A DNA stretch of 64,000 nucleotides from Vicugna vicugna (taxonomy: Eukaryota): positions 62,001 through 126,000 of the forward strand of contig MU058244.1 of assembly GCA_013265495.1 (NCBI GenBank), given 5' to 3'. Position numbers and translations under genes: made by a program. How positions within the stretch are numbered: position 1 is the stretch's first letter; every line of letters starts with the position of its first letter. The notes under the pieces are model-generated. The model was not told the origin of the DNA, searched no databases, and was given only the letters and a program-made list of their open reading frames with translations. Shown piece by piece: positions 1-16,125 of this stretch.

Positions 1-321
1 CAGACTCCCCGGTTCCTCACGAGCAGCTACTTTCCCTTTCTTCCCTTCCACCCCCTCGAGTTCCCAGCTCAGGTCGTGGCCCGGCCCTTCCACGAGGGAG
101 TGGGGACTTGGAGGACTCGGGCTCCCAGGGCGGGGACGAGGCACGCTGCAGCCCCCCTCCTCCGACCTGGGCGCTCTCCCATCCCGGAATGTGGGTGGAG
201 GTTCTTCATTCAGACGCCCCAGGCATTGGATTCTGGGCGGGGGCGCGTGGCAGCCGCCAGGTGAGTGCCCCAGACGCGCCCCTAAACCCGCCCCGCCTCT
301 CACCAGAGACTCACTCCCCCT

Positions 322-331
322 CCTTTTATGG
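322..331 (+). promoter_or_regulatory. CArG box / serum response element (CCTTTTATGG)
   Basis: Perfect CC(A/T)6GG upstream of the promoter; a serum response element is established in the human PDGFA promoter. Confidence 0.75.
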
Positions 332-769
332 AATGGGGGAGGCAGAGGCCCAGGATCCAAACCGTGGAAAGAGGCTGGAGCGCCTAGGCGAGGGGCGGGA
401 GGCGGGGGCCGGCTTGCTTTTGCCCTTTTTGGCGTAGCAGCTCTGGGCGCTGCCCTCTGCTGCCGCTGGGGCCCGAGAGAGGCGAGCCGGCGACGGCGGC
501 GCTTCTGCAGCGGCCTCCTCCCCTCCCCGTCCGGTGCTGCAGGATTGCAGCTGGCACTGGAGGGTGGGCAAGCTCGAGGGAGGGGCGCGCGGGGAGCCTC
601 GGCGGGCGAGCGAAGCCCTGGTGGCTGTGCTCGGAGCCGGGCGCGGGGCCTTGATGGATTTTACTGCCTGCGTGAGCGCGTGTGTGTGCTCACTGCGGCG
701 GCGGCGGCGGCGGCCGGGCCCTGCCCGGTCCGTGCAGCCCCCGCGCGCTTCCGAGGTGCGGGTCCCGGG

Positions 770-803
770 CCCGGAATCCGGGGGAGGCGAGGGGGAGGGG
801 GCG
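770..803 (+). promoter_or_regulatory. 5' part of the G-rich nuclease-hypersensitive element (Sp1/Egr-1/WT1 sites, G-quadruplex) of the PDGFA core promoter, truncated by gap
   Basis: CCGGAATCCGGGGGAGGCGAGGGGGAGGGGGCG immediately before gap 804-944, matching the human proximal promoter just upstream of the TATA box (from memory). Confidence 0.75.
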
Positions 804-944
804 NNNNNNNNNNNNNNNNNNNNNNNNNNNNNNNNNNNNNNNNNNNNNNNNNNNNNNNNNNNNNNNNNNNNNNNNNNNNNNNNNNNNNNNNNNNNNNNNN
901 NNNNNNNNNNNNNNNNNNNNNNNNNNNNNNNNNNNNNNNNNNNN

Positions 945-1502
945 GGAGCCGAGGGCGCGCCGCGGAGGGGCGCACGCAGGCCGCCGGGCCGCGCCGTGCT
1001 GGGCCGCGCCGTGCCCTGTCGGGCGGCGGCGGCGGCAAAAGGAGGCCGGAGGCGAGCTCGGGGCCCGCGGTGGGCGCGCAGGGCCGCCCGCAGCCCGCAG
1101 GGAGAGCGCGAGCCCGTGCCGGGCCTGGCCGGGCGTCCAGACAGGTGATGGGGTGGTGCGGCGACAGCGTCTCAAGCCTCGCTCCGGGGTCCCTTTCGGG
1201 GCTGATGCCCGCAAATATGCAGAATTACCGGCCGGGTCGCTCCTANNNNNNNNNNNNNNNNNNNNNNNNNNNNNNNNNNNNNNNNNNNNNNNNNNNNNNN
1301 NNNNNNNNNNNNNNNNNNNNNNNNNNNNNNNNNNNNNNNNNNNNNNNNNNNNNNNNNNNNNNNNNNNNNNNNNNNNNGGCGCGGCGAGCGCGCACTCCCT
1401 GCTCCTCCTCCTCCTTGCTGGCGCTGCCTGCCTCTCCGCACTCGCTGCTCGCGCCGGGCGCGCTCCGTCGGCTCCCTGCTCTCCGCGCCACCCTTCTCCG
1501 GG
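945..1502 (+). other. PDGFA: PDGFA exon 1 long GC-rich 5'UTR (visible parts, interrupted by gap 1246-1377)
   Basis: Segments such as GGAGCCGAGGGCGCGCCGCGGAGGGG, GCAAATATGCAGAATTACCGGCCGGGTCGCTCC and GCGCACTCCCTG...GGCGCTGCCTGCCTCTCCGCACTC resemble the human PDGFA 5'UTR. Confidence 0.85.
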
Positions 1503-1666
1503 NNNNNNNNNNNNNNNNNNNNNNNNNNNNNNNNNNNNNNNNNNNNNNNNNNNNNNNNNNNNNNNNNNNNNNNNNNNNNNNNNNNNNNNNNNNNNNNNNN
1601 NNNNNNNNNNNNNNNNNNNNNNNNNNNNNNNNNNNNNNNNNNNNNNNNNNNNNNNNNNNNNNNNNN

Positions 1667-1673
1667 GGCCGAG
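1667..1673 (+). CDS. PDGFA: PDGFA exon 1, 3' end only (..GCC GAG = Ala-Glu); ATG and signal peptide hidden in gap 1503-1666
   Basis: GGCCGAG followed by donor GTGGGT at 1674; phase 0 joins exon 2 (GAA GCC GAG). Confidence 0.8.
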
Positions 1674-2582
1674 GTGGGTGCCACCCCCGCACCCGGTCCC
1701 CTCTCCAGCTCCCCCGGCGCACGCCCCCTGCAGCCGCCCACCGGCCGAGGCACCCTGGGCTCCGGGGGTCTGCAGAGCGCATTTTGATTTCTGCTAAGGT
1801 GGTCGATTTTTAATTTTCCCAACTGGGTTCTATTTTCTGCCATGTCTAAGTGTGGCTGGTGAGTTTCCAGCGTGTTGCGTCGCTCTGCCGTGGAAGGACA
1901 GAGTGGCGGCGGGGTCGACGAGTGGGGAGAAACTTCGGGGGGCGCGAGCTCCTCTCGGAGGAGGGAAACCCCGGGCTTGGCGGACAATGCAGCATTGGGG
2001 TGCAGGGAGCGCGGAAGGGGGTGTGTATGTGAGAGCCGGCGGCTCCGGAGAAGCCGGAGAAGAGCCGCCGACAAGCAGGTAGGGGTGGCTGCTGCAGGAG
2101 TCCCGGCAGGCTGGGTGGGCAGCATGGAGCCGCAGCTCCAGGTTTTCCATCCCCACGCCCGGCGGGACGGCTAGCCCGGTGCAGTCCCACCCGACCGGGG
2201 CCTGCTTACAGGTGGCTGAGCGAGGCGAGCCGGGGCCGGGCCAGGCGCCCGCGCCCTCCCACCGCCTGCGTCCCCACCCCCCCAACCTCGAATTCTGAAT
2301 CCCTGGGAGCTCTGTGATGAATGACTGACTTTCTACAGCCCCCTTCGTGGGAACTTAGTGCTTGAGACCCCCCCAGCGACCCCCGACTCCCTTTAAGAAT
2401 CTGGAAGGAGTAGGGGGATACCGAGTGGTGGGGGTGGTCTGGGCAGGGACCATGAGCTGCGAGAGGCAGATATTTATTTAACTCTCACGTTCCCTGGCAG
2501 CCCCTCCCAGCCGCGGCTGCGTTCGGGGAGTCTTAGTCGGCGCTAGGGCCGCGGCTGGGCTGGAGTCCGGGGTGGGGCGGGA

Positions 2583-2613
<31 letters not shown>

Positions 2614-2618
2614 CGTGC
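2583..2618. repeat. (GT)13 microsatellite extended by alternating CGTGCGTGC
   Basis: Read directly in intron 1. Confidence 0.95.
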
Positions 2619-3028
2619 CGCGCACACCCGCGTGTTTGCAGGAGGAGAGACCCTCTCCCCCGCAGGTTCGGCCTGGGATTCCGGGTGTGAAATTTAAGCC
2701 TCAGGCTAGATTAAAGTGTTAGGGCTGCCGTGACTTTCGTCGCCGATCCGTGACGCATTTCAACTTGATCTTTCTAGATGTCGATTTCACTACTAGATCA
2801 GAAAACTCCCCGGGCCCCTCGCTGCCCCTAGACCTCCTGTAACTGACACCGGGGCGGGGGCGGAGGGGCCGGAGTGGGGGGCTTCTTTGGAAATTTAAGG
2901 GTGGGGAGGGCCTTCTTTTTGCAAAGGGCAGACACGGATAGGGACGGAGAATTTGGGGGTCTCACCCAGCCCCACCCCAGCCTCAGGCGCCAGGGCCGGG
3001 GCTGGGGGTCGGGCGGCCTTCATGCTGA

Positions 3029-3391
<363 letters not shown>

Positions 3392-3610
3392 TAAAAGCCC
3401 AGGCGGATGAGTCAGGAGTTTCTCTTCCAATCACACTTTCTCTCCCGGCGGCGGCCGAGGGCTGCTCACTCGCGCAGAGATTGTTTTTGCATTTAAGGAA
3501 AATGCCGAGTGTGTCACAGAAAGTTCAGCCGCACAGAGGCGCCGGCGCCCCGGCCAGGTGTGCAGCCCGGAGCCTGCCCTCGGGCCGGGAGGAGCCTGCT
3601 CAGGCCCTGG

Positions 3611-7862: not shown

Positions 7863-7967
7863 GGGCCGAGGATCCCCTGGAGACCAGCCTGAGAGCCCAC
7901 GGGGGCCGTGGCGCCAAGCATGCACCGGAGAAGCGGCCTGTGCCCATTCGGAGGAAAAGGAGCATCG
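7863..7967 (+). CDS. PDGFA: PDGFA exon 3 ([33 protein letters not shown]|SI; furin site RRKR at 7949-7960)
   Basis: Acceptor TCTGTAG/7863, donor GTGAGC at 7968, 105 nt, in frame with exons 2 and 4. Confidence 0.97.
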
Positions 7968-9320: not shown

Positions 9321-9926
<606 letters not shown>

Positions 9927-15414: not shown

Positions 15415-15541
15415 GTGGCCAAGGTGGAATACGTCAGGAAGAAGCCAAAGTTAAAAGAGGTCCAGGTGCGGCTGGAGGAGCACTTGGAGTGCACGTGCAC
15501 GACCGCCAGCCCGACCCCGGGCCACCGAGAAGAGGAGGCAG
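15415..15541 (+). CDS. PDGFA: PDGFA exon 5 (VAKVEYVRKKPKLKEVQVRLEEHLECTCTTASPTPGHREEEA)
   Basis: Acceptor GGGCAG/15415, donor GTACGC at 15542, 127 nt. Confidence 0.97.
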
Positions 15542-16069: not shown

Positions 16070-16125
16070 GAAGGCGTAGGGAGTCAGGTAAAAAACGGAA
16101 AAGAAAAAGGTTAAAACCCACCTAA
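16070..16125 (+). CDS. PDGFA: PDGFA alternative exon 6, coding part (GRRRESGKKRKRKRLKPT*, basic matrix-retention motif; exon continues to 16138)
   Basis: Acceptor TCAACAG/16070, stop TAA 16123-16125, donor GTAGGA at 16139, 69-nt exon. Confidence 0.95.

Follow-up and report, generated by a model that had tools for sequence, protein, structure and literature searches.

Does the DNA upstream of the canonical PDGFA promoter hold an additional first exon and, if so, is that exon kept to encode a PDGF-A without signal peptide or for some other reason? The question is raised by a stretch of 64,000 nucleotides of Vicugna vicugna DNA, called the window hereafter, in which PDGFA lies on the plus strand. 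The first-pass annotation, made from the letters alone, had proposed that an ATG at position 189 opens a short exon whose splicing onto exon 2 would yield a non-secreted PDGF-A, sent by the basic exon-6 tail to the nucleus or nucleolus.

Exons 2, 4, 5 and 6 of PDGFA were recognised by translation, and exact boundaries were obtained from cDNA alignment and splice sites (Table 1). The exon-5 peptide ...TCTTASPTPGHREEEA was found, among the protein matches, in alpaca only. At the end of exon 2 two GT donors lie in tandem, separated by 4 nt (TCC/GTAG/GTAAAT, 3241-3247, plus strand), the upstream one of which would shift the frame; this arrangement may account for some odd isoforms predicted for rat and siamang, with exon 2 in a different frame. 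Intron 1 includes a (GT)n/(GC GT) microsatellite at 2581-2610, and Rfam and tRNA scans of the window gave no matches.

Table 1. Coordinates of PDGFA exons, upstream exons and putative regulatory sites in the window
Feature	Position	Strand	Evidence and remarks
Alternative first exon of PDGFA (exon 0), 3' part	1-260	+	Bovid cDNA alignment; mammalian orthology
24-codon ORF, MWVEVLHSDAPGIGFWAGARGSRQ	189-260	+	Phase 0 with exon 2; orthologous peptides start predicted isoforms elsewhere
EGR1/WT1-type site, putative, GCGGGGGCG	237-245	+	Consensus match; within the last third of the ORF
Consensus 5' splice site CAG/GTGAGT	258-266	+	Exon end at 260; top score; used in the bovid cDNA and in mapped models
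GC box, putative, GGGGCGGG	287-294	-	Just 3' of the donor; conserved in the alignment
CArG box (SRF-type), putative, CCTTTTATGG	322-331	+	Kept in every species aligned
Second upstream leader exon, ATG 654, 34 codons, MDFTACVSACVCSLRRRRRRPGPARSVQPPRASE	654-755	+	Donor GAG/GTGCGG at 755/756
End of canonical exon 1 and donor GAG/GTGGGT (1673/1674)	1667-1679	+	Exon-1 coding part and parts of the leader N-masked
Exon 2, 97 nt, phase 0	3149-3245	+	Acceptor tgcttgcag/G; starts GAA GCC GAG
Exon 3	7863-7967	+	cDNA alignment and splice sites
Exon 4 (cystine-knot core)	9496-9683	+	Translation; cDNA alignment
Exon 5	15415-15541	+	Translation; cDNA alignment
Exon 6, coding part, basic tail RRRESGKKRKRKRLKPT and stop	16070-16125	+	Translation

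The donor at 260/261 and the exon that it closes

Examination of the proposed ORF confirmed its coordinates: the start codon (189-191) is preceded at -3 (186) by G and followed at +4 by T, and after 24 codons the last one, CAG (258-260), is followed directly by GTGAGT (261-266). The search of 1-188 for another ATG gave none, and the ATG-189 frame, read back to the window start, contains no in-frame stop. Splicing of 189-260 to exons 2-6 by the suggested phase-0 join of 260 to 3149 was computed to leave an uninterrupted frame of 214 codons, which ends in ...KKRKRKRLKPT at the exon-6 stop and carries the basic tail (16070-16122) in frame. The N-terminus had been described as lacking a hydrophobic core, and this also proved correct by Kyte-Doolittle hydropathy, with a maximal 8-residue mean of 1.1 as against 2.7 for canonical PDGF-A signal peptides. 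Given a donor in GC-rich sequence, such an ORF is within chance expectation. An in-phase, stop-free ORF with an ATG is present at 18% of the real GT sites in window positions 1-3600, and in Markov simulations a phase-0 ATG ORF reached the donor in 20% of cases, or in 14% when at least 24 codons were demanded.

The donor itself is beyond chance, because it is unique, best-scoring and invariant. The sequence CAGGTGAGT occurs a single time in the 64 kb with both strands counted, the site ranks first among the 6118 GT sites of the window (12.5 bits on a rough 5' splice-site matrix, on which the donors of exons 1 and 2 score 8.9 and 7.2), and all nine positions of the nonamer are identical in 7/7 aligned mammals, hamster among them. 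A divergent exon on the minus strand was also considered and rejected, as its best minus-strand donor (304) is broken in pangolin.

Alignment of window positions 1-803 revealed an end-to-end match with the regions upstream of PDGFA in pangolin, narwhal, desman, squirrel and titi monkey, and the exon-0 region is orthologous at 80-88% in five other mammalian orders. Hamster, whose locus has an assembly gap just after the donor, was aligned in part, and the rhinoceros contig, which ends before the promoter, was left out.

The junction between exon 0 and exon 2, which the first-pass annotation had suggested looking for in transcripts, is present in one bovid contig of 1388 nt (L008, Logan SRR22936415), whose sequence is that of a spliced cDNA. 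Nucleotides 205-458 of this contig match window positions 2-261, nucleotides 455-555 match 3146-3246 (exon 2) at 98%, and exons 3, 4 and 5 come next; the junction reads ...GCCGCCAG/GAAGCCGAG. An exon-0/exon-2 mRNA therefore exists in at least one ruminant. Intron 5 is retained up to exon 6 (nucleotides 976-1388), which identifies the source as an incompletely processed transcript. A scan of JGI metagenome contigs for the same junction found none. Logan-derived proteins were discarded as a measure of exon-0 transcript abundance, nearly all of their contigs being genomic, with intron 1 read in frame.

At its 5' end, the cDNA is colinear with genomic DNA of narwhal and desman over nucleotides 33-458, and exon 0 extends at least 385 nt 5' of the ATG in this bovid. 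This length places the transcription start site (TSS) probably to the left of the window and outside 1-190, where it had first been supposed to lie, about 600 bp upstream of the canonical TSS; exon 0 would thus be long, with a 5' end probably upstream of window position 1. Positions 28-72 (plus strand) hold a conserved polypyrimidine tract, ctttccctttcttcccttccaccccctc, then AG at 59-60 and 71-72, and so resemble a 3' splice site; since the bovid cDNA runs through them, they do not serve as an acceptor in that transcript.

To collect predicted isoforms, a search seeded on the exon-4 protein gathered PDGF-A proteins of many vertebrates, whose N-termini were then read, and a second protein search was scored on the exon-0 N-terminus and complemented by cluster listings. 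The Macaca fascicularis isoform X7 model (XP_045245775.1) starts with MWVEGPHSDAPGFGSWAGARGSRQ and passes straight into EAEIPRE, as the splice proposed by the first-pass annotation would have it. Orthologous 24-residue starts followed by EAEIPRE are predicted in Vulpes lagopus, V. vulpes, Canis lupus dingo, Callorhinus, Bubalus, Bos, Cervus, Odocoileus, Muntiacus, Oryx, the tenrec Echinops and Macaca, and the first 24 codons of pangolin X2 map to the position aligned with the window ORF. Exon-0/exon-2 models, from RefSeq or from submitters, cover at least 11 mammals in a long form of 214 aa with exon 6 (Vulpes lagopus X1, XP_041605339.1; Bubalus X3, XP_025130327.1) and a short form of 199 aa (Bos X3, XP_027382747.1); a further example is Echinops telfairi XP_045141858.1. 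They share with the window the orthologous ATG, the 24 codons, the donor, the phase-0 EAEIPRE junction and the 214-codon ORF, and both C-termini occur among them, but they are computational, come from other species and differ in the peptide at 2-9 of 24 residues. No camelid protein with an exon-0 N-terminus was among the matches listed, and the alpaca PDGFA model has a different start. As the isoform protein is in RefSeq for many mammals, it is not new as an annotation and is already annotated outside the species studied here.

Donor conservation, the bovid cDNA and the predicted isoforms together bear out the proposal of a genuine upstream exon ending at 260: exon 0 is real and conserved, a distal alternative to the canonical first exon of PDGFA. 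We infer its use in Vicugna vicugna, the location of its TSS and the fate of its transcripts from sequence.

Selection on the 24 codons and on the DNA around them

Regarding the peptide, the substitution pattern did not resemble that of a coding exon. In the ATG-189 frame pN/pS was 1.56, with 1.17 and 0.65 in the other two frames, and variable columns at codon positions 1, 2 and 3 stood at 6:6:4, with no third-position excess, in a test that has low power (five in-frame sequences, 72 nt). Among the predicted placental peptides 18/24 residues are variable, and these proteins hardly differ in the exon-2 peptide. Narwhal has CTG in place of the start codon, hamster lacks the ATG, a 1-nt deletion shifts the exon-0 frame in squirrel, and in the horse model the segment is read in a shifted frame that does not include the exon-0 ATG. 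The conservation anticipated by the first-pass annotation thus holds for the donor and fails for the ATG and the frame; start or frame is lost in three of the six loci fetched without regard to the ORF, and it is intact in the other three. Where intact, the ORF is exactly 24 codons long in Afrotheria, Primates, Carnivora, Pholidota, Eulipotyphla and Artiodactyla, a constancy that could reflect weak selection for an in-frame start, not for the peptide.

Sequence identity with the window amounts to 0.83-0.87 in the first two thirds of the ORF and to 0.99 in 241-270, which takes in the EGR1-type site, the donor and the first intron bases. The upstream region of about 800 bp is conserved throughout, at 80-99%, and positions 421-600, for which no coding is proposed, match the window at 94-99% in five other orders, a higher figure than for the candidate ORF. 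This pattern looks like conserved non-coding DNA that happens to be open, not like a coding exon, and the claim of coding function for the 24 codons is not upheld. The block at 421-600 is the most conserved one upstream; dog and fox models run through it, with a donor AGG/GTGGGC at about 563/564.

The EGR1/WT1-type site, the GC box and the CArG box form a conserved cluster that straddles the exon-0 donor. The pangolin counterpart of the CArG box, CCTTTTAAGG, is also a CArG box, and protein binding at the EGR1-type site and the GC box is predicted from their motifs. A serum response element has been described near -470 of the human PDGFA promoter. If the CArG box is its counterpart, the canonical TSS would lie near 800, where the first masked stretch begins.

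Splice routes, other first exons and translation

Mapping of predicted proteins onto the loci of pangolin, squirrel and titi monkey revealed a second route, from the exon-0 donor to an acceptor within exon 1, 67 nt upstream of the canonical ATG, and protein architecture implies the same join in many primates. The window counterpart of this acceptor falls in the masked stretch 1503-1666. In primates, the human X2 model included, and in squirrels, another exon-0 frame continues into the normal precursor; in the models of pangolin and marmoset, the MWVE/MRVE frame passes through exon 1 out of frame and exon 2 is skipped. Isoforms of this class (primate 'MPQASDPGRGRVAAAR...' forms including human X2, XP_011513718.1, squirrel X3, pangolin X2 and marmoset X4) have the first exon and donor in common with the window and differ from the exon-0/exon-2 form in keeping exon 1, those of primates and squirrels being N-terminally extended prepro-PDGF-A. 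The primate ATG of the extended frame is ACG in the window. In a pangolin mRNA that uses the -67 acceptor and keeps exon 2, the exon-0 ATG opens a 76-codon uORF overlapping the canonical start.

Further first exons have been modelled at the locus. The second upstream leader exon (MDFTACVSACVCSL...PRASE) is likewise in phase 0 with exon 2, for a 224-codon ORF; orthologous starts are joined to exon 2 in a buffalo model and, in models of pangolin, vampire bat and squirrels, to the acceptor inside exon 1. Intron 1 holds others with signal-less or altered N-termini. Positions ~2318-2400 (plus strand) are orthologous to an MTF...RPPT...KN.. first exon modelled in gorilla, macaque and rhinoceros, and positions 2779-2850 (plus strand) to an ML/WISLLNQKL... 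first exon in models of gorilla, squirrel, buffalo and deer, whose frame meets a stop after 17 codons in the window. The abundance of modelled first exons suggests that these 'isoforms' arise when ORFs are assigned automatically to minor transcripts that come from a broad CpG-island promoter. PDGF A-chain mRNA heterogeneity has been attributed to alternative promoters and polyadenylation sites (Rorsman, Leveen and Betsholtz 1992, Growth Factors 7:241), a report that resembles the present case in alternative promoter use at PDGFA.

Translation from the exon-0 ATG would depend on what precedes it. In the window, pangolin, desman and titi monkey the ATG-free stretch before it measures from 188 to more than 500 nt, and it could be the first AUG in all four, depending on the TSS. 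On the bovid cDNA two ATGs lie 5' of it, both out of frame, one at -340 in strong context (A at -3, G at +4) and the other at -200, and the ORFs of both extend beyond the exon-0 ATG and the junction; by the scanning model, initiation at the exon-0 ATG would therefore be suppressed on that mRNA.

Dirks and colleagues are said to have described, in Nucleic Acids Res in 1995, a PDGF-B/c-sis transcript from an intron-1 promoter, with an alternative exon 1 and no signal peptide. That case would be similar in that an alternative first exon replaces the signal-peptide exon and in the basic nuclear-targeting tail; it would differ in the gene and in the promoter, which is downstream, not upstream, of exon 1. 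For PDGF-A, the nuclear targeting signal of exon 6 that the first-pass annotation invoked is indeed a published claim (Maher, Lee and Donoghue 1989, PMC363024). As for a functional nuclear or nucleolar PDGF-A, nothing was found in favour and the evolutionary signature is unsupportive. Literature searched for a signal-less or intracellular PDGF-A, or for another first exon of the gene, yielded papers on exon-6 splicing or unrelated work alone.

A probable distal leader exon and rival readings

The explanation that we consider fairly probable is that exon 0 is a distal alternative leader exon with two splice routes, in which the donor and the promoter-type sites are selected and the 24-codon peptide is incidental. 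Transcripts would begin upstream of the canonical CpG-island promoter and meet the consensus 5' splice site at 260/261. By one route, 260 would be joined to the exon-1 acceptor that precedes the canonical ATG by 67 nt, so that almost all of the long GC-rich leader is dropped and the normal prepro-PDGF-A ORF is kept; ATG 189 would then start an out-of-frame uORF overlapping the canonical start codon. By the other, exon 1 would be skipped, 260 would be joined to 3149 (exon 2) and ATG 189 would be in frame for a 214-codon PDGF-A without signal peptide. The main output would be leader variants of the normal PDGF-A mRNA, in which splicing from this strong donor takes out the region of the canonical promoter and leader, with an exon-1-skipped by-product that carries an incidental ORF, and selection would keep the exon end, the donor and the embedded EGR1-like, GC-box and CArG sites, not the 24-codon peptide. 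Because the exon end, the donor and the promoter sites are kept but the peptide is not, the likeliest view of the signal-less protein is that it is an incidental by-product of alternative promoter use which varies between lineages, or that it is never made, rather than that it is a conserved intracellular isoform.

It seems decidedly unlikely to us that the distal promoter instead serves a translated, signal-less PDGF-A, carried by the exon-6 tail to the nucleus or nucleolus as a conserved intracrine isoform. The mRNA does exist in a bovid, models in at least 11 mammals include long (exon 6) and short forms, the ORF of the window is intact and opens at the first ATG, which has G at -3, its N-terminus has no hydrophobic core, and the published exon-6 claim fits. 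Against this reading stand a pN/pS of 1.56 with 18 variable residues and no third-position excess, the disappearance of ATG or frame in narwhal, hamster, squirrel and horse, and the strong out-of-frame ATGs whose ORFs overlap the start in the bovid cDNA. Similar signal-less models from other upstream and intron-1 first exons point to automatic ORF calling, and the literature search found no paper on such an isoform. Moreover, cystine-knot disulfides would not form in a protein made in the cytosol, a fate that a signal-less PDGF-A would presumably share. We give little credence, too, to a broader version in which the distal promoter is used in most placentals for a translated signal-less PDGF-A, intracellular and, with exon 6, nuclear, the in-frame AUG being the sole selected feature 5' of exon 2 and the AUG-less lineages having lost the function.

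That the stretch is conserved as promoter or enhancer DNA, maybe with a U1-binding site for elongation or promoter direction, and that its spliced transcripts are low-level noise, is also unlikely. Conservation of 1-803 at 80-99% whatever the ORF, the EGR1-like site in 241-270, the most conserved part around the donor, the extension of conservation into the 'intron' and the many alternative 5' exons modelled at PDGFA would all agree with it. A fortuitous GT, however, would hardly be the best 5' splice-site match in 64 kb with nine invariant positions, and the occurrence of the exact junction in independent annotations of many orders and in one cDNA exceeds what it would give. Finally, the exon might be unused in the species of the window, its ATG, ORF and donor being inherited sequence without transcription through them; we hold this to be very improbable, since the exon end, the donor and nearby elements are conserved here as in species using exon 0, even if the matches listed include no camelid exon-0 protein and the alpaca model starts elsewhere.

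Under the preferred reading, of a distal leader exon with an incidental ORF, the exon-0 splice can bypass either the long GC-rich 5' UTR or the signal-peptide exon, and it bears on the control of PDGF-A output by transcript choice and translation. The many PDGFA 'isoform X' proteins are not to be taken as evidence of distinct proteins. Were the signal-less protein real, PDGF-A would be one of the few growth factors whose intracrine form is encoded in the genome, and there would be a natural substrate for the old observation of nuclear targeting by exon 6.
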